A stretch of DNA of 64,000 bases from Heteronotia binoei (Eukaryota): positions 12,090,001-12,154,000 of the forward strand of contig NC_083237.1 of the NCBI RefSeq assembly GCF_032191835.1, written 5' to 3'. Shown here piece by piece: positions 42,740-62,491 of this stretch; within the stretch, counting starts at the first letter, position 1, and each line of letters starts with the position of its first letter. Position numbers and translations under genes: made by a program. The notes under the pieces are model-generated. The model did not search any database. It was not told where the DNA came from and worked only from the letters and a program-made list of their open reading frames with translations.

Positions 42740-45700
42740 GCAATATGTTTTTATGGCTATGTGCTTCTAAGCTGTCATCACCAATCAACTCAGCTTGATT
42801 TCACCAATGTTGATTGGGCTGATTATCAGATTGCAGCTGGGGAGGGGGGGGTCACAGTGGCTGTAGATATTCATTTGTTTCACTTCAAAATGGAGCATGG
42901 AAATTAGAGAGAAATGTATGGCATAAATATAATAAACAAGATAGAGATTAAAGTGTTTATTTAAATAATTCTAGGCATCCACAATGCCACAGTTTAGCCC
43001 AAATTTTCCCAACCCATTGTTATTTTACGTTGTTAAACTGGCTCTGTGGAGCCTGAGGTACATAGACTCTCTTCTTTCTCCTATTCAGCCAGCATGGTGG
43101 AGTGGAGTGGTTGTTAATCACATTAAAACCGCTCTTTTCTGTATTGGGGGATTGGTTTTTTGTCAGATTAAAACTTGGAATGTCAGTTTAGGATGAGGTT
43201 TCAGATACCTGCTCATCCACGAAATTCACTGTATGACTTTAGGACACTTGCTAAGGGTCAGCCTAGCCCACCTCATAGTGGAGATAAAATGGGAGAATAC
43301 AACCATCTGTAAACCACCTTGAGTTCTATTGAATAGTTGCTGGCAAGATATGCTAGGGCGACTGTCATAATGTGATGGTTTTACTTGTAATTTATGAGTC
43401 TTCTATGAGTGGAAAGGGCACCTCTGGTTCCAATCCTATGACTGAATACAACCTACATCTTGGTATTTGTCAGTGTGTCAAAATGTAGTCAGTTTAGTAT
43501 AACTGGGCATTGGGAAAAAGAGTAGATACAAGGCTTAGGGCCTCCCACTCACATACCTTGGCTTAAGCAAAGTAACTACTCATTACAACAGGCAAAATGC
43601 AATATGGCACACTGGGAAGTGACTCCCCACTTCCCAAACTCTTTCCCTTCCAAACCCAACAGCCCAGCACAGTGTTACCTCTATGCTAAGTTAGTGTGAG
43701 CTCACATATTTTAGCCTCCAGCTCATACATTTTTTGTCTTAGCTCAAAAAAGATGACCCCAAAGCACACTAATTTATGCAGTAGCACACAGCTTTAATGT
43801 CAGTAGCTCACAAATTTTTGCTGACAAGACTCTGTAGATTAGAGGGAACATTGGTCCAGTAGTCAGTGTCGCAGAATTGCTGTTTTCTGGTTGAAGCTGA
43901 TCCAGCCACAGTCCTTCAGAAACTGGCCTCAAGTAGGAAGGAAAGTGTTCAGAGCCTCCCTCCTCGCCATTTGAGAGGAGTAATCAGCTCCAGTTCATAG
44001 GTGGGCGGTCTGCGGGCTAACTCCTCCAAAAGAAGTACATCCAATTTATGGTCGCCATTTTTTTTTACTATTTAGCAATATGCGGATAAGCGCAAAACCT
44101 CATAAGCGCCATAACAAGAAGGGCAAAGGGAGAAATTCTTCTGACCTATGCGCATGCGCTGAGGTAGCATTTATGCGCTTATGCGAATAAGTGAGGGAAA
44201 CAAATAAAAGCCTCCACAGTACCGTCGTGTGGAAGGCAGAGAACGATTTCACCCCAGAGTGATGTGAATTGCAGTATGGCAGCCTGATCGCTAATATCGG
44301 GAACAAAGATATTCATGAAGGAACTGGGTCAGTTTAACATGGACTCAACACACTGAGTGAACAAGCCTTCTGCACTACAGCCTTGAGAGTCTTCTCAGAA
44401 GGAGCCACTGTTAGCCCCATCACACAAACAAGAACTCTAATAAACACCAGCTCTGTCTCAGACTGCTTAGACTGCAGTCTCCCTCAGACTTCTCTCAGTC
44501 TGCTCTGAACTGAGATTTCTCTCTCCCTCTCCTCTTTAACTTCTTACGTTGGTTACCATGGAGGTGGTTAGCCAATCACAGTGAGTGTTTCCACTGTCAC
44601 TCATGCAAACTGCTTTCAGTCCATCACTCCCAGGCATTGGAAATAAGGGCAAATTCAAGGTCTAGGGCCTCCTTTCTTAAAGCCCCTGTCCCACTCACAC
44701 ACCTTGGCTTAAGCAAAGTAATTATTCATTACAATTTATTACAACAGGAAAAATACAATATGGACGGGACTTTTTTGAGCAGGAACGCAGTTTCAGCTGG
44801 CTTGGTGCCAGGGGGCGTAGCCTAATATGCGAATGAGGTCCTGCTGGGCTTTTTCTACCAAAAAAAGGCCCTGAATATGGTACAATGGATAATGTGCTCC
44901 CCACCCACCAAACTCTTTCCTTTCCCAACCCAACAGTCCTTGCTCCTAGCTCCAACCCCAAAGTTCCCAGATATTTCTTGAGTCAGACCTGGCAACCCTA
45001 CCTGCAGCCCATAGGTCATTTTGGCTGCCAAAAATGGGGTGGGTGGAGGTAACAGCCCTTCCTCTCCCTGCACCATGGTTGCAATCACAATGGAGCCCAT
45101 GCCAAATTTTTACTCAGGAGTTGCAACCGGGACTTGCAGTTGCAGTGTGGATGTAGCTTCCTCGTTGCAAACTCGTGGAAGAAGTAACTTCTAATTTGGC
45201 TGTAAGGAGAGGGGGAAGAAAATAAACCATTTTTATCAGATCCACACATTTACCTTAAAACATAACACCATTGCCTAAAAATATTTCAAAGCACCCAAAA
45301 ACCAGAGCTTAGCCCCAACAGTTCCCCAGTGACTTCACCACGTTGAAGTGCCTATAAGAAACTTTCAGAGATGTTTTAGACATTTTTCCATGGCAGTTAC
45401 TCAAATCTCTGGCTGCGTAACTTTGCCAAAACTGGAGAGTTACAAAAAGAAATAGCTCACCATTCAACAGGGTTGGGTTTTTTTCCTCCGTAGCAAACAG
45501 AAATATATCATTCCTCCAAATAGTGTTAGTGGAAAGGGTTCGTCATAAACATCATAATTGTCACCAGTGGGCATGTCTGCAAGTCTTTGGGGAAAAGACC
45601 AGAGTGGAAGGTTCTGACTCACAGATGATGAAACTTTATATAGACATGTGAGAAAGTAGAACGTGTTCCTGCTGATGGAGAGAACATTCATCCCACACTT

Positions 45701-48017: not shown

Positions 48018-48944
48018 ATGGAGTGTCCAAATCAAACACAGCCGGCTGTGTTCATCATCTCTGGATTCTCATTCCCGAAAGAATTAGACGTGCTGCTGTT
48101 ACTCTTCTTCTTGCTCATGTACATTCTGACTCTCTGTGGAAATTCTCTGATTGTCTGGGTGGTGGCATCTGATGTCCAGTTGCACAAGCCCATGTACTGG
48201 TTCCTCTGCCATTTGTCCATCATGGATATGGCTTTCTCCTCCATTGTGGTCCCCAGATTGATTGCAGGTTTCTTCCCTGGTGGGAACATCATCTCTTTTG
48301 GAGAATGTATATGTCAGGTATTCTTTCTGAATTTCCTCGGATGTACTGAAAGTCTCCTTTACACTGTTATGGCTTACGACCGCTTCATTGCTATCTGCAA
48401 GCCCCTCCACTACAGCCACATCATGCATTGGAGAGTCTGCCTCACCCTCTGTTTGGGTACCATGATCGGAGGCTGCCTGAACTCAGTGTTAGAGACGACC
48501 CTCACCTTTCAATTGCCCTTTGGATGGAACAACAAGATTGACTATGTCTTTTGTGACATCCCTGCTCTACTGAAGCTGGCTTGCGCAGACACAACTTTCA
48601 ATGAGATGGTGGCTGTAGTGGATATCGGCCTGGTGGCCATGACCTGCTTCATCCTTATCCTGACCTCCTATGTCTATATTGTCTCCGCCATTTTGAGGAT
48701 CAGCAGCAGTGAAGGGCGTCGCCGGGCCTTCTCCACGTGCTCAGCCCACATCACTGTGGTCATTATCTATTATGTTCCAGTCGTTTTCCATTACCTGAGG
48801 CCAGCATCTCAGGACTACATGGATGGTGTGGTGAGCATGTTCTACACCACAGTAACCCCGTTTCTGAATCCTGTCATCTACACATTCAGGAATAAAGAGA
48901 TGAAGGCCGCTCTGTCGAAAGTGTGTGTTGGGAATCCCAAGTAA
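48018..48944 (+). CDS. Olfactory receptor, OR10G-like, 308 aa, intact ORF
   Basis: OR motifs present; close paralog of 60199-61125; PFGW in place of PYCG. Confidence 0.92.
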   Translation: MECPNQTQPAVFIISGFSFPKELDVLLLLFFLLMYILTLCGNSLIVWVVASDVQLHKPMYWFLCHLSIMDMAFSSIVVPRLIAGFFPGGNIISFGECICQVFFLNFLGCTESLLYTVMAYDRFIAICKPLHYSHIMHWRVCLTLCLGTMIGGCLNSVLETTLTFQLPFGWNNKIDYVFCDIPALLKLACADTTFNEMVAVVDIGLVAMTCFILILTSYVYIVSAILRISSSEGRRRAFSTCSAHITVVIIYYVPVVFHYLRPASQDYMDGVVSMFYTTVTPFLNPVIYTFRNKEMKAALSKVCVGNPK

Positions 48945-49084: not shown

Positions 49085-50490
49085 CGTCGCCCGGGCAGAG
49101 CTGGGCGACCGGCGAGTAAGACCCGCGAGTGCTGAGGCAGAGGCGCCGCCCTAGGCTGCATTCCAGCTTGTGCGGAGCCGAGTGGCGAACGGAGTGGCTG
49201 ACGAGCGGTGAACAATTACAAGCAGCGACTGAGGAAAGGTGTGGTCGAAGACCTGAGGCGTTTGGTAGCACCATAAGCCGGCAGAAGGGAGCTGGTGGGA
49301 ACTGCCTGGGGCCACTGGACATTGAACATCTATGAGACGGGATGCTGAACTTGATGGACCGCTGCTTTGATCCAGCTGGGCTGCTCTTATATTCTTCTGT
49401 TTTTAACTCTAGGTGCTCTCTAGTGCTACGTCTGCATTTTTTTTTTTAGTCAGATGCTTTTTCATTAAAAAAATTATGCCTTCAGTGCTGCTTTCTGCAG
49501 GAGTTATATATGGAAGGTCTGGGACCCTGGCTCAAATCCCTGTGCAGCCCTCCACGCCTCGTGTCTCAGAGGTTAAAGCCCCTCCTTCAGCTTCTATTTA
49601 TCTGTCACATGGGAATAGTAAAAGGAGACACAACAACAACGGCCTCCTATTGATATTGGAAACTGTTCTAGAGGGCAAAAAAAAGTAGGAAATGTATCAA
49701 AGGCTGAGCTGAAGTTTCTTCCCAAACAGGGCTCTTTTTTGTAGCAGGAACTCCTTTGTATATTGGGCCGCACCCCTGTGATGCAGCCAATCCTCCAAGA
49801 GCTTACAGGAGACCCTGTAAGAAGAACCCTGTAAGCTCTTGGAGGATTGGCTACTTCATTGGGGAGGGACAGTGGCTCAGTGGTAGAGCATCTGCTTGGT
49901 AAGCAGAAGGTCCCAGGTTCAATCCCTGGCATCTCCAACTAAAAGGGTCCAGGCAAATAGGTGTGAAAAACCTTAGCTTGAGACCATGGAGAGCAGGGGA
50001 GGGATGGTGGCTCAGTGGTAGAGCATCTGCTTGGTAAGCAGAAGGTTCCAGGTTCAGTCCCTGGCATCTCCAGCTAAAAAGGGTCCAGGCAAGTTGGTGT
50101 GAAAAACCTCAGCTTGAGACCCTGGAGAGCCGCTGCCAGTCTGAGTAGACAATACTGACTTTGATGGACCGAGGGTCTGATTCAGTAGAAGGCAGCTTCA
50201 TATGTTCATAACATCGCACAGCCGGGCAGAGTAAGGGTCCTGGACTGCCCAACCCTGTGTGACTGGGAGCCACAAGAGGGCTCACCCCCCCCTCGGGACT
50301 GCCAGGTTGCACTGGAGGCATTACCAGAAACCCTGACATGTACCACCCTTTGCTCAGAGGTGGGACTGCTGCTCCACATACCACAACCATCGCGCTTTTG
50401 AAGCGACCGGGCTCTGCACTGTGCGCACTTTATATCTTTATTCAACCAGCACCTTACTTACCCAGCACCTACTTACAACCAGCACCTTAC
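49085..50490 (+). mobile_element. Duplicate of the LINE 5' end (49085-49330 plus 50210-50490), interrupted by MITE/SINE sequence
   Basis: Near-identical to 50516-51015; AACATC is repeated at both edges of the interruption. Confidence 0.8.
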
Positions 50491-50515
50491 TTACACGTTC
50501 AGGAATAAAGATGAA

Positions 50516-53500
50516 CGGTCACCCGGGCAGAGCTGGGCGACCGGTGAGTAAGACCCGCGAGTGCTGAGGCGCCGCCCTAGGCTGCATTCCAGCTTGTCCG
50601 GAGCCGAGTTGCGAACGGAGCGGCTGACGAGCGGTGTACAATTACAAGCAGCGACTGAGAAAAGGTGTGGCCGAAGATTTGAGGCATTTGGTAGCACCAT
50701 AAGCCGGCAGAAGGGAGCTGGTGGGAACTGCCTGGGGCCACTGGACATTGAACATCACACAGCCGGGCAGAGTAAGGGTCTTGGACTGCCCAACCCTGTG
50801 TGACTGGGAGCCACGAGAGGACTCACCCCCCCCCCCCCCTCGGGACTGCCAGGTTGCACCGGAGGCATTACCAGAAACCCTGACCCTGACATGTACCACC
50901 CTTTGCTCAGATGTGGGACTGCTGCTCCACATACCACAACCATCGCGCTTTTGAAGCGACCGGGCTCTGCCCTGTGCGCACTTTAAATCTTTATTCAACC
51001 AGCACCTTACTTACCCAGCACTTATCCTGTACTATGCTCAAATCAGAAGATCTTGCATGGACTAGCACATTAGCACTTTCCTTGTAACCTCCTGTATACA
51101 TTTTTAGGCTCTGCTAAATTTAGTGTAAATTTTAATCAATTAACTCATGGGATTGGTTGTCTGTATTAATTGGATTGATTTGTTTGTGGTAAATTAATTT
51201 GGAAGCATTATTGGGGGGTGGGATTATATTCATTTTTACCATCAGATAAGGCTATATATATTTTACCAATTGATATAAGGAATTATGGGGTAGGCTTAAT
51301 TGGGTTGATTGAGAATGGGGATTGTTGGAGCAGAGTGAATTGGGGGGCTAATTAAGGACAGTGTTGAGATACTAGTGGTGGCAGTTACGTTAGCATCTAT
51401 TACCACCAACGGGGGATGACTGGCCTAGGGATTCCAGTGCTCCTGGGGAGGGGGAGGTATGGCGGTGGGAGCAGAAAGCAATATAAGGGAAGGGGGCGGA
51501 GACCTGTGAGGGCTCGGCCTCCTTCCAGTCTGTGCCCCATCCCGAGGGTGACAGGTAGTAGGGTCAGGTTGGACCCGCCTCCGTCATTGGTGTTATGCAA
51601 CACCAGGTCCATTAATAATAAGGCCTCTGTCCTTCGAGAGTTTCTACTCGAACGGGACATGGACCTGGTTTGCGTGACCGAAACCTGGGTATGAGAGAGT
51701 GATACTGTGGCCCTCTCACAAACAGCTCCCCGGGCTATTCGGTCTTTCACCAATCGCGGACTAGCGGGCGGGGGGAGGAGTGGCGCTGTTCATACGAGAG
51801 GCTTACTCCTTTAGGGCGCTCCCGGCTCCAAGGATCAAGGGCATTGAATGTGCCGGTCTGGCGTGGGAGGCTGGAGAGGGGTTGGCGATTTGGCTGGTGT
51901 ACCGTTCACCTAGCGCACCGGCCAATGCCCTACCATCCCTGCTCGAGGCGGTGGCAGGCTGGGTGTTGGAGCACCCAAGGCTGGTGATCCTGAGTGACTT
52001 CAACGTCCATGCGGATGACCCGGCCTCTAGTCAGGCGACAGACCTAGTGTCATCCATGGCGACACTAGGACTCTCTCAATTTGTAACATCCCCCACGCAT
52101 CAGGCCGGGCACATGTTAGATTTGATCTTTGCAGCCTGGGTTGTGGTGGACGATATAACTATAGAAGCTGTGCCATGGTTGGACCACCGCGCCCTTAGGG
52201 CTTGTGTGAATGCCCCACCCCAAACCTGCTTAGGAGTCGAGCCTATTTTGGCTCGCCCGCGGAGCCAAATGGACCCGGAATGGTTCCAAATGGCTCTTCG
52301 GGATCCCTGGCCCTCTGGCAATTCCTTGGAGGCCCTGGTCGAGGTTTGGCATAGCCGACTCTCCAGGGCTATTGAAGAGATCGCACCTCGACACCCTCTG
52401 CGACCCCGGACTAGGCTGGCGGTGTGGTATACCCCGGAACTACGCCAGCTGAAACACAGCCTCAGATGGCTACAAAGGCAATGGCGGCATACTCGAGATG
52501 AAGCGATTGGAGCATCTTATAGGAAATTTATGAGATCCTATGAGATGGCAGTCAAGGCCACAAAGAAAACATACTTTGCGGCTAAGATTGCGTCTGCAAA
52601 TGCGCGCCTGGCACAATTATTTAGGATAATTCGAACGCTTACTATATTGCCACAGGGCAAACTAATGTTAAGGAATTGGAGATAGGCTGTGTGGCTTTTG
52701 CGAAACATTTTGCAGACAAGGTCCAATCACTCCGCCGCGACTGCCCTGCCATATTGGACTCAGTATGTAAACTCGAGGCTCCGTGCACGCCTTCCAGCTT
52801 GATCCTGGATCATTTCAACCCTCTCAGCTTGGAGGAAGTTGACAGAGTCCTCTCTGCTGCACGTGCAACAACTTGTGATCTCGACCCGTGCCCCTCCTGG
52901 CTAATTAAAGCTTGCCTGGAGGAGCTAAGATGTCCTATATGGGACAGCATAAATAGATCTCTTTCAGAGGGCCGTTTTCCTGCCCTTCTGAAAGAGGCAG
53001 TGGTCCGCCCTCTCCTAAAAAAGGTTACATCAGACCCGACCGAATTGGCACATTACCGGACGGTCTCAAATTTGCCCTTTTTGGGCAAAGTTATTGAGAG
53101 GGCTGTTGCGCTGCAGCTACAGAGTTTTCTGGAGGACGCTTCCACCTTAGATCCATTCCAGTCTGGCTCCCGCCAGGAACACAGGGCGGAGACAGTCTTG
53201 GTCACTCTCATGGATGATCTCCGGAGACATCTGGATCGAGGCGGCGTGGCGGTTTTGCTGCTGCTAGACCTATCAGCTGCGTTCGATATGGTCAATCACC
53301 GGCTGCTGACCCGCCGCCTCGCCGACGCAGGGATTCAGGGGTCCGCGTTACAATGGCTTTCCTCTTTCCTTGAGGGTCGGGGACAAAGGGTGGCAATTGG
53401 GGGAGAGCTATCCTGGAGACACTCACTTGACTGTGGGGTGCCACAGGGAGCAGTTCTCTCTCCGATGCTATTCAACATCTTCATGCGCCCCCTTGCCCAG

Positions 53501-54576
53501 ATAGCCCGGAGATATGGGCTGGGTTGTCATCAGTATGCTGATGATACCCAGCTCTATCTATTGATGGGCGACCGGACTGGAAATGCCCCGGAAAATTTGA
53601 ACCGGGCGTTGCAAGCCATGGCAGACTGGATTAAGCTGAGTGGGCTGAAATTTAACCCAGTGAAGATGGAGGTCCTTTGCCTGGGCTGCGGCGGTTCAGA
53701 GAATGGGGTCCCTCTCCCAGTTTTTGATGGGGCGCAACTGGTAGCAGTGCGCAGAGTTAAGAGCTTGGGAGTCTTACTGGAGCCTTCCTTGACAATGGAG
53801 GCCCAGATAACAGCTACTGCCATGTCTGCCTTTTTTCATCTTAGACGGGCGAACAGTTGGCCCCCTTCCTGGAGCGCAACGACCTGGCAACAGTGATCCA
53901 TGCAACGGTCACCTCGAGGTTAGACTACTGTAATGCCCTCTACATGGGGCTGCCCCTGTACCGAACCCGGAAACTGCAGCTAGTGTAGAACGCAGCAGCC
54001 AGGCTGTTATTGGGACTGCCTCGTTGGGAACATGTGCAGCCTGGGCTGCGGGAGTTGCACTGGCTGCCAATTGTTTACCGGGTCCGTTACAAGGTGCTGG
54101 TCATTACCTTTAAAGCCCTATATGGTCGAGGACAAGCCTACCTTAGGGACCGCCTCTCTCCATATGTTCCCCAGAGAGCACTACGATCAAGTTCAAAAAA
54201 TCTTCTCGAAATCCCTGGGCCAAAAAGAAACCAAACTAAAAACTACCAGAGAACAGGCGTTCTCTATGAAGGCCCCCCAATGGTGGAATCAACTGCCAGA
54301 AGAGATGCAGGCCCTGTGGGATTTTAACCAATTCCGTAGGGCCTGCAAAACTGTCCTCTTCCAGCTAGCTTTCTAAGATGGAACCCCTGATAACATCAAT
54401 AACACCGAGCCATCTTATACACAATTTGATTATTTTATAATGTTATATTGTTTTATTGGTTTTACTGTTTAAATTATTAATTATATTATATATTGTTTTA
54501 TTGTATCATGGTTTTACCATGTCTTGTTAGCCGCCTTGAGCCTGCCTTGGCGGGGAGGGCGGAATATAAATAAAAG

Positions 54577-54620
<44 letters not shown>
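50516..54620 (+). mobile_element. Near full-length L2-clade LINE, disabled (APE-RT ORF ~51416-54376)
   Basis: APE motifs LCNTRSI, VTETW, LSDFNVH; RT motifs LDLSAAFD, GVPQG, QYADDTQLY, SRLDYCN; in-frame stops (51692, 53986) and frameshifts; (TTA)n tail ending 54620. Confidence 0.92.
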
Positions 54621-56702
54621 GGCTGCTCTGTTAAAACTGTGGGTTGGGAACCCCAGATAAACAGCACCATGCTGGTATGGCTATGTTCCGCTCTAAGCTA
54701 TCATCACCAATCACCTTAACTTGATTTCACAAATGTTACTTGGGCTGATTATAAGAGTGGAGCTGGGGAGGGGGTCAAAGTGGCTGAAGATATGCATCTG
54801 GTTTACTTCAAAATGGAGACTGTGAATTAAAGAGATATGCATGGTATATATAATATAAACAAGATAGAGATTAAAGTGTTTTTTAATAATTCTAGGCATC
54901 CACAATACTGCAATTTAGCCCACATGTAGCCAATCCATGATTATTTTACCTTGTTGAACTAGCTCTGTGGAGTCTGAGGTACATAGACTCTCTTCTGTCT
55001 CCTATTCAGCCAGCAAAGTGGAGTGGAGTGGTTCTTAATCAGACTAAAACCATTCTTTTCTTTTTCTGGTGAATTGGTACTTTGTAAGAGTAAAACTTGG
55101 AATGTCAATTTAGGATGAGAGTTCAGATGCCTATTCAGACATGAAGGTCACTGTATGAACTCAGGACATTTGCTAAGTCTCAGCGTAGCCCACCTCATAG
55201 TGGATATAAAATGGGTGAATATAATCATATGTAAACCCAGGGGCGTAGCTAGGGCTTTGGGGGCCCGGGGCCCAAGATTTATGTGGGCCCCCCTATGTGT
55301 GTGCACGCCGCCAGAAACAGGATATGATGTCACTTCCGGTGATGTCACTTCCGCAGGATGGCCACCACTTGCGAGGGAGCCCTGCTGGAAACAGGAAGTG
55401 ATGTAACTCCCCCAAAATGGCCACCACTTGTGGGGGGGAAACAGGAAGTGGTGTCACTTTGGGGGCGGCACCCCCCCCAAGATGGCACTGCTGGTGCGAT
55501 CTAGGTCATGTGATTGATAACCTGATTACCCCACCACACCATGTGACAGGGAGAAATGCCACAAGCAGCCTGCTGGCCCAGCTGTTCCCCTTGTGCCCTG
55601 AACCATGCATGCCAGATCAGACCACAGTACATCCAACCTTTCCGTTCAGCATAGAGGGCCAGTTGTCATCCCCCCGCCCCCCAAAGACTCAGTATGTTTC
55701 CACTACAACTGGGCAAGGTACAATTCTCCCTTCTCCACTTTAGTTTGCAAGCACACCAATATTGCAGGGGTTTGGGCACTCAGGCCAGAAAGTCCAAGAA
55801 GGATCAGAATACACACGGGCAGAAACAGAACTGAAATCAATGGGACTCACAGCTACTACCCAGCAAGCCCATTATAGCTACTAACTAGCAACCACAGATG
55901 CCTATACATTTGAATTTTTTTAAAAAAATGTGTTGTGCTCAACTAGTTTAGCCTCTCATTTTAATAACTCATAACTGTAGCCAAATATGTTTATGTTAAC
56001 AAGTGTGCAATGGAATGAGAGGGAAACCAAAACAGACTTTTTGAGTAGTCATTTGTGAATAGGGCTGCAAACCTATGCACTTTCTTAGAAATATGTCCTA
56101 TAGAATACACCAGGGCATGTGTAAGAGAAAGGAAGAGGGACAAAAGCATACGGCAGAACTTAATATTACTTATAAAACCGTTAATGCAGTACTACAAAAA
56201 GAGGGGGGATCAAATTATATTAACCAATAAGGGTGCTCTTATTTACCCCCCGCCATTTGCAGATTAGTTAATTTGGATCTGAAAACCTGATCTTGGTTTG
56301 GCTGGGTTCGGATGCTTTTCGAGTCCGCCCTCTAAATAACAGTTTAAGCAGTCACAGGGAAAGTTTCTTAAAAGTTTAGAAGTGTAAACAGCCGTAACAA
56401 TCTGATCGTGGGGAGAAGTAGGGGCTGAAGGCACATTCCGCGCCCGAAGGCAGCCAGGGCGCGAGTGTTCAGACGACCCCATCAGTCAGGAATGTTACGC
56501 CTGTCCTCGCCTGGGCAGCTTCGCCGCTCGCTTCCCAACTTGCGCGAGGATCCCGGCGGGAAGCAAGCAGGCCATGGCAGTGGGGCTAAGGGGACGAACT
56601 CACCCCAGCTGTGCCCGTCGGGGCTCAGAGCCCACCCAACTCCCCGCATCCCCCTCCCGCCCCTATTTCCCCAGAGAGCCGGCTGGAGCTCTCCCCCCTC
56701 AC

Positions 56703-56733
56703 CGTTGTCCTCATCGCATCCCCAGTGCAGCAT
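56703..56733 (-). pseudogene. Captured first coding exon resembling cytosolic alpha-carbonic anhydrase (CA1/2/3/13 type)
   Basis: gccATG CTG CAC TGG GGA TGC GAT GAG GAC AAC G|GTGAGG = MLHWGCDEDN-G with a phase-1 donor. CA2 exon 1 is MSHHWGYGKHN-G with the same intron position. Confidence 0.62.
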
Positions 56734-56889
56734 GGCTAGTCCCCTAACTCGAGGAGAAGGAGGAGGAAGGCAGTGCTGGTGAAGATGCAGATAGGTATAC
56801 GCCCGGCTCTCCACCGAAAGCCGCAGAAGAGGCGCCCAGACTCTCCAAGAGCCTGCAGGGACAAAGCGTGCCCGGGCGACCCCGCGGCG

Positions 56890-56990
56890 CCCTCTTATGC
56901 ACAGCGCCCTGCAGGCGCCGCACGTGGCCGCCCGGAGACCCGGCCTCCAGAGGCCCCGCAGCACCCCCTCCCGAGACCTGATTGGCGCTT
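56890..56990 (-). promoter_or_regulatory. Promoter-like elements of the captured CpG island
   Basis: Minus strand: CCAAT (56985-56981), E-box CACGTG (56921-56926), TATA-like CATAAG (56899-56894), ~160 nt upstream of the ATG. Confidence 0.5.
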
Positions 56991-58084
56991 CTTTCCTAGA
57001 TAGCAAGTGGGCACAAGATTCGGAGTCCTGCTGGATCGGAGGAAAGGTCCAGCTCCTCCAAAGTGGTCATCCAGAAGTTTAACAAGCTGCTTGTTAAAAT
57101 GATGCAGCACAGCAACACGGCCATTATTCGGGACCACCCTTGGCAATGTGGGGGCCCCCCAGACCCCCCAGACCTGGGGCAACCCGCCCCCCCCCTCCCT
57201 ACACCACTGTGTAAACCACCTTGAGTTCCATTGAAGAGTTGCTAGCAAGATATGCTAGGTTATCTATCATAATGTGATGGTTTAACTTGGAATTTATGAG
57301 TCTTCTTTGCATGGAACTGGTTCCACTTCCAAGGCTGAATACAACCTATAACTTGGTATTTGTCATTGTGTCAAAATGTTGTCAGACTGGTGTAACCCGG
57401 GCAATGGAAATAAGGACATATTCAAAGCTTAGGCCCGCCCACTCGCATACCTTCGGTTAAGAAACTATTCATTACAACAGGGGAAATACAATATGGCACA
57501 TCGGGTAGTGTGCTCCCCATTCCCCAAACTCTTTCCCTTCCGAACCCAACAGTCCAGTATTTTTATGTTTTAAAATTTAATTTAATTTTATTTATATCCC
57601 GCCCTCCCCACCAAAGCAGGCTCAGTAGTCAGTGTCCCAGAAGTTCCGTTTTCTTGTTGAAGCTGGTCCAGTCGCAGTCCCTCAGAATCAGGCCTCAAGA
57701 GGGAACGAAAGTTCTCAGGGCCTCCTTCCTCACCATTTGAGTGGAGAAATCAGCTCCAGTTCATAGACAAGCGGTCTGGGGGCTAACTCCTCCAAAAGAA
57801 GTGATTTTCAAAAAGGGAGGGCCCACACTAGACAAAATTTCTTCAGCTGAGACCTTTCAGGAATTCAGTCCTTTGAGAGACAGAATGACTAGGCCTCTTA
57901 GTCCTCACCCTACCTCCTTGTAATTTTTCTTCAAGTCCTCCTACACACAGTCCTCCTGGTATAGAAATAGAGTCGTTTAATTGCTTAACTCAACAGCATA
58001 CATCTCCAAAGCTCTACACTGGTCTTCCTCCTACTATGCCAGATCAAGCAACGAATGCCACTCCTGTCTCGCCCTGAACGACCT

Positions 58085-60198: not shown

Positions 60199-61125
60199 AT
60201 GGAGTGCCTAAATCAAACACAGCCGGCTGAGTTCATCATCTCTGGCTTCTCATTCCCCAAAGAACTGAAGGTGCCACTGTTACTCTTCTTCTTGCTCATG
60301 TACATTCTGACTCTCTGTGGAAATTCCCTGATTGTCTGGGTGGTGGCATCTGATGTCCGGTTGCACAAGCCCATGTACTGGTTCCTCTGCCATTTGTCCT
60401 TCCTGGATATGGGTTTCTCCTCCGTTGTGGTCCCCAGAGTAATTGCAGGGTTCTTTCCTGGTGGGAACATCATCTCTTTTGGAGAATGTGTATGTCAAGT
60501 ATTCTTTTTCCATTTCCTCGGATGTACCGAAAGTCTCCTTTACACCATTATGGCATACGACCGCTTCATTGCTATCTGCAAGCCCCTCCACTACAGCCAC
60601 ATCATGCATTGGAGAGCCTGCCTCACCCTCAGTTTGGGTGCCATGATCGGAGGCTGCATGCACTCAGTGTTAGAAACGACCCTCACCTTTCAATTGCCCT
60701 ATGGATGGAGCAACCATATTGACTACATCTTTTGTGACATCCCTGCCCTACTGAAGCTGGCTTGTGCAGACACATCTTTCAATGAGATGTTGACCATAGT
60801 GGATGTTGGCCTTTTGGCCACAACCTGCTTCATCCTTATCCTGACCTCCTATGTCTATATTGTCTCCGCCATTTTGAGGATCAGCAGCAGTGAAGGGCGC
60901 CACCGGGCCTTCTCCACATGCTCAGCCCACATCACTGTGGTACTTCTTTATTATGTCCCGGTCGTTTTCCATTACCTGAGGCCAGCATCTCAGGACTACA
61001 TGGACGGTGTGGTGAGTGTGTTCTACACCACAATAACCCCATTTCTGAACCCTGTCATCTACACATTCAGAAATAAAGAGATGGTGGCCGCTCTGTCGAA
61101 ACTGTGGATTGGGAATCACAAGTAA
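60199..61125 (+). CDS. Olfactory receptor, OR10G-like, 308 aa, intact ORF
   Basis: OR motifs present; paralog of 48018-48944; PYGW in place of PYCG. Confidence 0.92.
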   Translation: MECLNQTQPAEFIISGFSFPKELKVPLLLFFLLMYILTLCGNSLIVWVVASDVRLHKPMYWFLCHLSFLDMGFSSVVVPRVIAGFFPGGNIISFGECVCQVFFFHFLGCTESLLYTIMAYDRFIAICKPLHYSHIMHWRACLTLSLGAMIGGCMHSVLETTLTFQLPYGWSNHIDYIFCDIPALLKLACADTSFNEMLTIVDVGLLATTCFILILTSYVYIVSAILRISSSEGRHRAFSTCSAHITVVLLYYVPVVFHYLRPASQDYMDGVVSVFYTTITPFLNPVIYTFRNKEMVAALSKLWIGNHK

Positions 61126-62491
61126 ATAGCAGTATGCTTGTATGGCTATGTTGTGCCCTAAGTTGTCATCACAAATCGACTCAGTTTGGTTTCACGTAAT
61201 GTTGGTTGGGCTGATTATCAGAGTGGAGCTGGAGAGGGGGTCACAGCGGCTATAGATTTAGAACTGTTTCACTTCAAAATGGAGGACATCAATCACAAGC
61301 ACCACAATGTTGTTTGAATTGATTCTAATATTGGCAAGTTTACTGTTTTTAATACTGTAATTTAATACTGTTATTCTGGTTTATTGCTAGCCACCCTGAG
61401 CCCATTCCCGGAGAGGGCGGGGTCCAAATCCAAAGTAAATAAATAAAAAAGAGAAATGCATGACATAAATAAAAAAACAAAATAGAGATTGAACTGTTTT
61501 TCTTTTAAATAGCTTTAAGACAAAAACAATTCCAGCATTTAACCCAAATGTTGCCAACCCATGAGTATTTCACCTTGTCAAACCGGCTCCTTGGAGCCTG
61601 AGACTAGACTCTTCCATCTTTTTATTCAGCCAGTGTGATGGAGTTGAGTGGGTGTTTTTGTTTTTGTTTTTTTGGCCAGACTAAAGCCACTTTTTTCTTT
61701 TTTGGTGGAGTGGTTCTTTGTCTGACTAAAACTTGGAATGTCAGTTGAGGATGAGGGTTCAGATGCTTACTCAGCCATGAAGTTCACTTTCTAAGTCTCA
61801 GACTAACCCATCTCAGAGTGGAGGTAAAACAGGAGGATACAATCATATGTAAACCAACTTGAGTTCCATGGAAGAGTTGCTGGCAAAATGTGCTAGGGCG
61901 ACTGTCATAATGTGATAGTTCAACTTGTAACACATGAGTCTTCTGTGAGTGGAAGGGCACCTCTGGTTCCAATCCCATGGCTGAATACAACCTATAACTT
62001 GGTATGTGTCTATAATATAGTGGGTTCCACACAGTGATGAGGTGAGGTGGTAGTGATCATAGCTCTTTTATTAGATACAGCATAGTATAGCACTGCACTC
62101 AAAGACTGAAGACTGGGCCAATGGGGCCAACTATATGTACACTCAAGGTTCCCATGCTAGCATGCTATTGGACCATTCAAACCAACAGGGGGCTCGTGAC
62201 TGGAGTAAGGCAGAAGGGATTTGGATCCTACTTCCTATTGTTCCTGAGCCCCCAAGCTCAGTCCTACAGGCTCCAATGAGCCAGGCAAGAACTCCATATA
62301 TTAATCACAATTCTGATCACATATACAAGAGTGTCAAAATGTTGCCAGATTGGTGTAACTCGGGCATTGGAAATAAGGGCAAATTCAAGGCTTAGAACCT
62401 CCCACACACACCCGTTGCTTTAAGCAATATATAACTATTCATTACAAAAGGGGATATACAATAAGGCACACTGGGTAGTGTGCTCCCCACC

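Follow-up and report, generated by a model that had tools for sequence, protein, structure and literature searches.

The window, that is, the whole 64,000-nucleotide stretch of gecko (Heteronotia binoei) DNA analyzed here, contains an olfactory-receptor (OR) cluster in which a 1.97-kb element lies at positions 55238–57209, with a LINE on one side and an OR gene on the other. The element is bounded by perfect 8-bp copies of TGTAAACC at 55230–55237 and 57210–57217, which constitute its target-site duplication (TSD). The empty site, reconstructed in sequence, was compared with two paralogous segments within the window: the alignments to window 42915–43667 (82%) and to window 61457–62010 (73%) are both unbroken, and each segment carries a single TGTAAACC at the homologous point. 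An initial annotation of this DNA had proposed a 1,972-bp insertion with a perfect 8-bp TSD, missing from both paralogous flanks; the duplicated octamer and the alignments through the empty site bear out both parts of that proposal.

A hAT-like family and its ends

The termini of the element are CAGGGGCGTAGCTAGGG (5') and CCCTCCCTACACCACTG (3'). On the plus strand, its first 366 bp (55238–55603) and its last 106 bp (57104–57209), the latter terminating in CCCTACACCACTG, represent the 5' and 3' ends, respectively, of one non-autonomous hAT-like family. The 5' end includes a 17-bp terminal inverted repeat (TIR; 55238–55254) that matches the 3' TIR at 13 of 17 positions, as well as the subterminal direct repeats D1–D3 (55313–55461). 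TIRs of hAT elements are short, with the consensus start 5'-YARNG. Both ends of this element are of that type (5', CAGGG; 3', read as the reverse complement, CAGTG), in keeping with the imperfect CAG...CTG TIRs noted in the initial annotation.

Every family copy compared starts with CAGGGGCGTAGCTAGGG, and the termini follow the pattern CAGGGGCGTAGC...CTACRCCACTG. Among 1858 candidates for the 5' end, at least 40 family copies were scored, and these are 98–99% identical to the element; for the 3' end, with 843 candidates and again at least 40 scored, identity is 83–95%. The 3' end of one long family copy, L035, is 80% identical to that of the element. The family is non-autonomous, very young and present in high copy number. 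Perfect 8-bp TSDs were observed in six of six complete members, namely the window copy, a sister copy on contig C10 (described below) and four others. Because five further complete elements with the same ends carry such duplications, the TSD in the window is not a chance repeat. With both an 8-bp TSD and short, imperfect, YARNG-type TIRs, the element has the hallmarks of a non-autonomous hAT.

The captured cargo and its parent gene

The interior of the element (55604–57087) is colinear with C7:46607922–46609855, at a substitution identity of 96.5%. In the 2.6-Gb genome it matches only four places, among them the 5' end of a gene on C7, the outermost in a carbonic anhydrase (CA) cluster. The non-TE interior was traced only to this parent, to the C10 sister copy and to one partial copy; the ends match more than 1800 candidates. 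A whole-genome search with the interior had been expected by the initial annotation to return a colinear match at the 5' end of a cytosolic CA-cluster gene, and that is where the match lies.

Read on the minus strand, the cargo begins with a captured 5' UTR and ~350 bp of CpG-island promoter (56734–57087), delimited by alignment to the parent. Within it, the sequence contains a CCAAT box (56981–56985), the E-box CACGTG (56921–56926) and the TATA-like CATAAGAG (56892–56899). The 31-nt coding part of exon 1 follows (56703–56733, aligned to the parent and the C10 copy; ATG-LHWGCDEDN-G), with its start codon at 56733–56731, and then an intact phase-1 splice donor GT (56701–56702) and the initial ~1.5 kb of intron 1 as copied from the CA13-like parent (55604–56700; parent C7:46607922–46609461). 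The captured promoter is oriented antisense with respect to the neighboring OR genes. All of the minus-strand features that had been listed for this CpG island (CCAAT, E-box, CATAAG, ATG and the GTGAGG donor) were recovered where they had been placed, and the colinear C7 match, which runs from the promoter through exon 1 into intron 1, corroborates the earlier claim of a capture from the 5' end of a CA gene.

The copy differs from its parent in several respects. At 56717 it has TGC (Cys) where the parent has TAC (Tyr), which agrees with the change at Tyr7 that had been surmised; only the window copy has this change. Next to the CCAAT box of the window copy, 13 bp of the parent have been deleted, and 417 bp of the parent intron, flanked by ACC, are absent between 56247 and 56248. 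For the 417-bp difference, insertion of a TE into the parent was considered and rejected, as no TSD accompanies it; it looks like a deletion in the Pack lineage with microhomology at its edges. The promoter part of the window copy has a GC content of 0.65 and a CpG observed/expected ratio of 0.68, vs. 0.72 in the parent.

In the parent locus, promoter and 5' UTR together account for 363 bp; exon 1 and the initial 1.5 kb of intron 1 follow. Exon 1 (MLHWGYDEDN-G, then the donor GTGAGG) splices to another six CA exons with the frame preserved, and the gene is intact: it has seven exons, AG/GT splice sites throughout and a 777-nt CDS of 258 codons, and the zinc-binding His motifs HFHWG and VVHW are present in the protein. 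Exon-wise matches to PF00194 (Carb_anhydrase) start ~6.5 kb downstream of the captured parent locus. The cluster consists of three tandem genes at C7:46.43–46.61 Mb. The top score of exon 2 was against CA13 structures (91 bits, vs. 77 bits for CA2); for exon 6, all 60 matches listed were to CA2, which is much more heavily represented in the PDB. The source of the cargo is a complete cytosolic alpha-carbonic anhydrase gene, CA13-like in character.

Junctions, copies and the probable route of capture

Homology of the parent locus continues past both capture junctions, and no hAT sequence of the element's family was found in 21 kb around the C7 parent; copying thus ran from the gene to the transposon. 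At the 5' junction, which was defined by a three-way comparison of the window, L035 and the parent, the trinucleotide AAC (55601–55603) is common to the hAT element and the parent, a 3-bp microhomology. The 3' junction contains a 16-bp palindromic filler (57088–57103), of which 57089–57098 is an inverted copy of 57078–57087, so that the sequence across this point reads TTTAACAAGC-T-GCTTGTTAAA. Together, the microhomology and the palindromic filler point to template switching during repair.

A search for further copies with the same termini and another TSD, as the initial annotation had advised, yielded a second copy of the chimera at C10:68216894–68218879. It has identical junctions, the TSD TGATGCAG and 98.9% identity to the window copy, and the flanks of the two are not shared. 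Because the junctions are the same and the TSDs different, the chimera moved at least once following capture. Over 1466 sites, the window copy has 7 changes of its own and the C10 copy 8, and in 43 further changes the two agree with each other and differ from the parent. The C10 copy has lost the ATG; the window copy retains both the ATG and the splice donor.

A third locus (C7:27344956–27347183) contains CA intron 1 with different junctions and has no 5' hAT end; it reaches 361 bp deeper into the parent intron. Because of these differing junctions and the missing 5' hAT end, more than one capture or rearrangement may be involved. Private changes number 3 in the third copy, 12 in the parent and 17.5 in the Pack lineage, and no clock-consistent rooting of these three was found.

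From these data, we conclude that the element is very probably a Pack-type, that is, gene-fragment-carrying, non-autonomous hAT transposon that captured its cargo and later transposed. We infer the following course of events. A member of the young hAT-like family would have lost its interior in double-strand break repair, most likely during gap repair following excision. Repair synthesis would then have jumped to the CA13-like gene on another chromosome, using its open, GC-rich 5' end as an ectopic template, and copied ~1.9 kb (promoter, first exon and the near part of intron 1) before returning to the 3' end of the element. The resulting chimera would have retained functional ends of 366 bp and 106 bp, and transposase supplied in trans would have mobilized it into two or more sites, each with its own target duplication, of which the window copy occupies one. 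The genome contains 2623 candidate matches to PF05699 (hAT dimerization domain), many of them in open frames of ~940 aa; these are possible sources of transposase. An autonomous element with these termini was found neither in L035, whose 4.8 kb contained LINE-RT fragments and spurious GC-rich ORFs only, nor among the ORFs adjoining 35 family ends, in which no transposase was seen.

Might the chimera have come about otherwise? One alternative makes the window its birth site: a resident hAT would have been broken there and its gap filled from the CA locus, and only the C10 copy would have transposed later. Most animal Pack-TIRs arise by transposition-independent gap filling (PMC8277862), with which the junction microhomology and the filler agree, and the tally of private changes (7 vs. 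8) makes neither copy clearly older. However, 43 shared changes against some 7–8 private ones suggest that the chimera long predates the split between the window and C10 copies; moreover, gap filling is biased toward the same chromosome (PMC8277862), whereas the parent here lies on another contig. We therefore view a birth in the window as conceivable but rather unlikely; since the 43 shared differences predate the split, the origin could be the window copy, the C10 copy or a third copy that has been lost. A composite (macro-) transposition, in which two hATs flanking the CA 5' end used their outer ends together, is much less probable still. Insertion of hAT elements near the 5' ends of genes is frequent, which would favor such an arrangement. 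Yet the junctions lie inside hAT sequence (at family position 366 and 106 bp from the 3' end), and inner termini and TSD remnants are absent from them; the parent locus, having no hAT of this family in the surrounding 21 kb, renders composite and read-through capture alike unlikely. The opposite direction, in which the transposon donated promoter and exon 1 to the CA gene, would account for the shared sequence and for nothing more. It is already contradicted, and we assign it practically no probability: the parent has neither hAT ends nor a TSD, its exon 1 shows the conserved W-G-Y...N-G and the phase-1 intron of cytosolic CAs with in-frame splicing, and the third copy includes another 361 bp of the parent intron.

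Fate of the cargo and relation to known systems

The cargo and the 3' end of the element (55604–57209) drew zero reads at ≥ 98% identity in three raw RNA-seq runs, each ~6% sampled and of unspecified tissue. When the same runs and one metatranscriptome were examined over 53200–57699 at ≥ 98% identity, reads covered only the repeated hAT 5' end and an upstream repeat, with no reads, joints or loose ends on the cargo; a run search using the cargo alone as the query returned small shares only (≤ 0.20). These results bear on the idea that the captured CpG-island promoter is active at its new site, giving rise, by way of the exon 1 donor, to an antisense or chimeric OR-cluster transcript as an exapted module. 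The ATG, donor GT, CCAAT, E-box and TATA-like motifs are all retained, the CpG ratio is still 0.68, and some animal Pack-TIRs are transcribed (PMC8277862). Against such activity stand the lack of cargo reads in the sampled runs, the 13-bp deletion by the CCAAT box, the sister copy on C10 that has no ATG, and the CpG losses that make up 6 of the 15 private changes of the two copies, as would be expected if the copies were methylated. We thus consider an active promoter improbable. The initial annotation had called the promoter intact and had looked to minus-strand spliced reads from the 56702 donor for support; its motifs do persist in the sequence, but the deletion beside the CCAAT box detracts from its intactness, and none of the three runs, ~6% sampled, contained such reads. 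The cargo, consisting of only 10 codons and a splice donor and with no transcription detected in the sampled runs, is most likely a neutral passenger.

The ends are common to the members of the family; breakpoints and interiors differ, with many unrelated interiors lying between the common ends. GC-rich, CpG-rich DNA was present just inside the 3' end in 13 of 13 other members sampled, with no fewer than eight mutually unrelated sequence types among them. Two or more other interior types reach ~9 copies each, and for one of them the 9 copies are accompanied by a split parent-like locus. The common ends with unrelated interiors, the CpG-rich 3' sides of the members sampled and the other multicopy interiors fit a reading that we put forward tentatively, as a serious possibility: one young hAT family may repeatedly acquire and spread CpG-island promoter/first-exon modules, as a vertebrate equivalent of the Pack-MULEs of rice. 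In that case, the gecko genome would offer a natural system for promoter and exon shuffling by DNA transposons, and the wider value of the present case hinges on whether the family captures systematically. The case itself is a fully traceable one in an amniote, as the parent, both junctions, the empty site and a transposed sister copy have all been identified: a cut-and-paste transposon has duplicated an entire module of promoter, first exon and splice donor and carried it to other chromosomes. New transcription start sites, antisense RNAs and chimeric first exons can all originate from modules of this kind.

Pack-type capture had been described in the initial annotation as much less documented in vertebrates than in plants. 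The record is fuller than this suggests: a survey of 100 animal genomes reported 208 hAT Pack-TIRs, among them Pack-hAT-N8_XT of Xenopus tropicalis, which carries the CAPSL 5' UTR (Tan et al. 2021, Nat Commun; PMC8277862). The gecko element, having TIR ends around non-TE sequence with an unambiguous parent, is a Pack-TIR as defined in that survey and a further case of a process already known in animals. As in the animal Pack-hATs, the ends of a non-autonomous hAT enclose host DNA whose parent can be identified and lies on a different chromosome, microhomology is present at a breakpoint, and there is more than one copy, each with its own 8-bp TSD; multicopy cases are uncommon among animal Pack-TIRs (4 of 370; PMC8277862). 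Its cargo of ~1.5 kb contrasts with the 291 bp of the frog element and forms a complete module of promoter, first exon, splice donor and intron, and its host, a squamate, lies outside the 100 genomes surveyed (PMC8277862). Rice Pack-MULEs and plant Pack-TYPE elements (PMC5861414; bioRxiv 10.1101/2021.06.18.448592) are likewise TIR transposons that copy and spread gene fragments, and the GC-rich cargo from a gene's 5' end is a further likeness to the rice elements; however, Pack-MULEs are Mutator elements with 9–11-bp TSDs and long TIRs, whereas the gecko element is a hAT with an 8-bp TSD and short TIRs in an animal host. Helitrons of vespertilionid bats (PMC4224331) provide another example of an amniote DNA transposon amplifying host promoters and first exons. 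Those elements are rolling-circle transposons with neither TSD nor TIR that capture by read-through, while the gecko element moves by cut-and-paste and probably acquired its cargo through repair.

Insertion into an olfactory receptor cluster

When 54900-57500 was read directly, all of the features described in the initial annotation were found: the target-site duplication (TSD), the unit, its termini and the minus-strand motifs. The TSD, TGTAAACC, lies at 55230-55237 and is repeated at 57210-57217. Between the two copies stands a unit of 1,972 bp (55238-57209) that starts with CAGGGGCGTAGCTAGGG and ends with CCCTCCCTACACCACTG; of the 17 positions of its inverted termini, 13 are identical, and each terminus opens with the hAT-type YARNG. 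The empty site was rebuilt by joining both flanks with one TSD copy and was then aligned to the window. It aligned without interruption to 42915-43667 (82%) and 61457-62010 (73%), and at the homologous point of each of these paralogs TGTAAACC occurs just once. Both the insertion and its target duplication are therefore genuine.

The surroundings are those of an olfactory receptor (OR) cluster: the ORFs at 48018-48944 (+) and 60199-61125 (+) encode 7tm_4 olfactory receptors. The cluster consists of duplicated blocks, each about 12-18 kb long and with a single OR gene of 308 aa. A LINE (51780-53896, +) stands between the insertion and the OR gene at 48018-48944, in a GC-rich block (about 50000-54200); its two adjacent ORFs are endonuclease-like (301 aa) and reverse transcriptase (406 aa). 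RNA reads and contigs accumulate at 53800-54250.

The cargo and its parent gene

Where does the interior of the unit come from? A search of the whole unit against the window's own 2.63-Gb genome divided it cleanly into ends and interior. The 5' end (bases 1-366; 55238-55603) had at least 40 scored places from 1,858 candidates, at 98-99% identity, and the last 106-122 bases had at least 40 from 843 candidates, at 83-95%. Outside the unit itself, the interior had only three matches: a full-length sister copy on contig C10, C7:46607922-46609855 and C7:27344956-27346821.

The second of these matches is the 5' end of a carbonic anhydrase (CA) gene. A genome-wide Pfam Carb_anhydrase scan showed that C7:46.43-46.61 Mb holds a tandem array of three CA genes on the minus strand. 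The outermost gene has its exon 2 at C7:46602709-46602906, 6.5 kb downstream of where the interior matches. As assembled, this parent gene has seven exons (31, 198, 119, 96, 63, 156 and 114 nt), all with AG/GT borders, and its coding sequence of 777 nt (258 codons) includes the HFHWG and VVHW zinc-ligand motifs. Because exon 2 scores highest against CA13 structures (91 bits vs. 77 for CA2) but the matches listed for exon 6 are CA2 entries throughout, we call the gene CA13-like rather than CA13.

In the window copy, minus-strand CCAAT, CACGTG and CATAAGAG motifs precede the start codon, and exon 1 reads gccATG CTG CAC TGG GGA TGC GAT GAG GAC AAC G/GTGAGG. Aligned to it, exon 1 of the parent is ATG CTG CAC TGG GGA TAC GAT GAG GAC AAC G/GTGAGG. 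The ATG and splice donor are thus kept, with a Tyr-to-Cys change at 56717; the initial annotation had deduced a Tyr codon behind this TGC, and the parental TAC proves it exactly right. The C10 copy has ATA instead of ATG.

Is the captured promoter used? GC content is 0.63-0.66 across 56450-57200, and the CpG observed/expected ratio of the island is 0.68 vs. 0.72 in the parent; CpG losses account for 6 of the 15 private changes pooled from the window and C10 copies. A 13-bp deletion adjoins the CCAAT box. When three raw RNA-seq runs, sampled at about 6% each, and in addition one metatranscriptome were mapped to 53200-57699 at 98% identity or better, zero reads fell in 55604-57209. Coverage within the unit was confined to the repeated 5' end, from which one contig runs on into canonical family interior. 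The tissue of the RNA-seq runs is unspecified, so silence of the cargo is not proven. We read the cargo as a neutral passenger that lies antisense to the OR genes and has latent potential as a promoter.

Capture, junctions and later transposition

The direction of copying is from the CA gene into the transposon, because the 21 kb examined at the parent contain no sequence of the present hAT family, and because parent homology to a third CA-bearing locus extends 361 bp past the window copy's junction. At the 5' junction, the family reads ...CCCTGAAC/TTGTGGG, the parent ...CTCCCAAC/CATGTATG and the window ...CCCTGAAC/CATGCATG, with a 3-bp microhomology, AAC. At the 3' junction, parent-derived DNA stops at 57087 and is followed by 16 bp of filler and the family's last 106 bp. 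Within the filler, the 10 bp that precede it are repeated in inverted orientation (TTTAACAAGC-T-GCTTGTTAAA).

The window and C10 copies also lack 417 bp of the parent at 56247/56248, and ACC flanks the gap. An insertion of these 417 bp into the parent was rejected because there is no TSD; the difference is thus better read as a loss from the transposon lineage. The missing stretch (C7:46608578-46608994; L032:5579-5995 in the parent locus) belongs to CA intron 1 and has a hairpin-like squamate SINE-type motif (...AAAATCTTGTTGGTTTTTGAAGGTGCTACTGG...). If the unit were a composite of two complete elements, inner termini would be left, and the junctions do not fit this. The junctions and the deletion instead appear to be marks of repair synthesis with template switching, by which the transposon would have captured its cargo from the CA gene; this is the proposed origin of animal Pack-TIRs (PMC8277862).

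The C10 copy (C10:68216894-68218879), flanked on either side by TGATGCAG, has both junctions, the filler and the 417-bp deletion identical to those of the window copy. Over 1,466 ungapped cargo columns, 43 changes relative to the parent are common to both copies, whilst the window copy has 7 private changes and the C10 copy 8, which argues that the chimera was already of some age when transposition parted them. The private divergence, about 0.5% per copy, agrees with the 98-99% identity among family ends. We consider capture by a Pack-hAT followed by transposition very probable, in support of the CA capture that the initial annotation had proposed.

The third CA-bearing locus (C7:27344956-27347183, minus strand; L037:4957-7183) is a chimera of three pieces. 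The first, 1,637 bp of CA intron 1, includes the 417 bp that the window copy lacks; the second, 489 bp, is a copy of C7:57837104-57837592 (98%); and the third is a hAT 3' end, which borders the flank AGGCAAAC. A search of 14 kb gave no 5' hAT end, and upstream lies a different repeat, for which there are over 3,300 candidate copies. The locus may be either an independent capture or a rearranged relative.

The hAT family and animal Pack-TIRs

Perfect 8-bp TSDs bound five further complete elements: the C10 copy and four more members of the family. Lengths in the family run from 637 to 4,815 bp; copies share the 5' end and diverge at 372, 383, 402, 439, 449, 529, 620, 714 and 784 bp. One of them, of 1,602 bp (C2:99016072-99017673; L029:1501-3102; TSD TCCAGAAC), has a 1.1-kb interior present in nine copies at 97-99%. 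A further match to this interior, at C7:28453806-28456154, is interrupted by about 1.2 kb, and that locus is likely a second parent. Another interior type has about nine copies. The 4.8-kb member (C4:53810399-53815213; L035:100-4914; TSD GGAAAAGC) has no transposase and contains minus-strand LINE reverse-transcriptase fragments and tandem repeats of 70 bp; its 3' kilobase is GC-rich and has at least 13 copies. A member like it is located 54 kb past the window end, at C15:12207813-12212582.

In each of the 13 other members sampled, the 700 bp internal to the 3' end have a GC content of 0.52-0.64 and a CpG observed/expected ratio of 0.51-0.81, well above the flanks except at one locus (L047), whose flank is equally GC- and CpG-rich. 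These 13 sequences comprise at least eight unrelated types. Heterogeneous GC-rich interiors thus seem common in the family, which does not prove their origin from gene 5' ends. No transposase was found in the family copies examined. Genome-wide, the hAT dimerisation domain has 2,623 candidate matches, dozens in uninterrupted frames of about 940 aa, which suggests that at least one autonomous hAT family was active here very recently.

How does the element compare with known cases? Tan et al. (2021; PMC8277862) reported 370 Pack-TIRs among 100 animal genomes, of which hAT elements carry 208; most breakpoints had microhomology, and multicopy Pack-TIRs numbered only four, one of them from alligator and the other three from Xenopus tropicalis. 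The element falls within their definition and in the rare multicopy class, and its cargo of promoter, exon 1, donor and intron is unusually complete. It would carry greater weight only if promoter capture were systematic genome-wide or the copy were transcribed. Gene capture by a Pack-hAT is already known; the element is a textbook-quality example of it, rather than a new kind.
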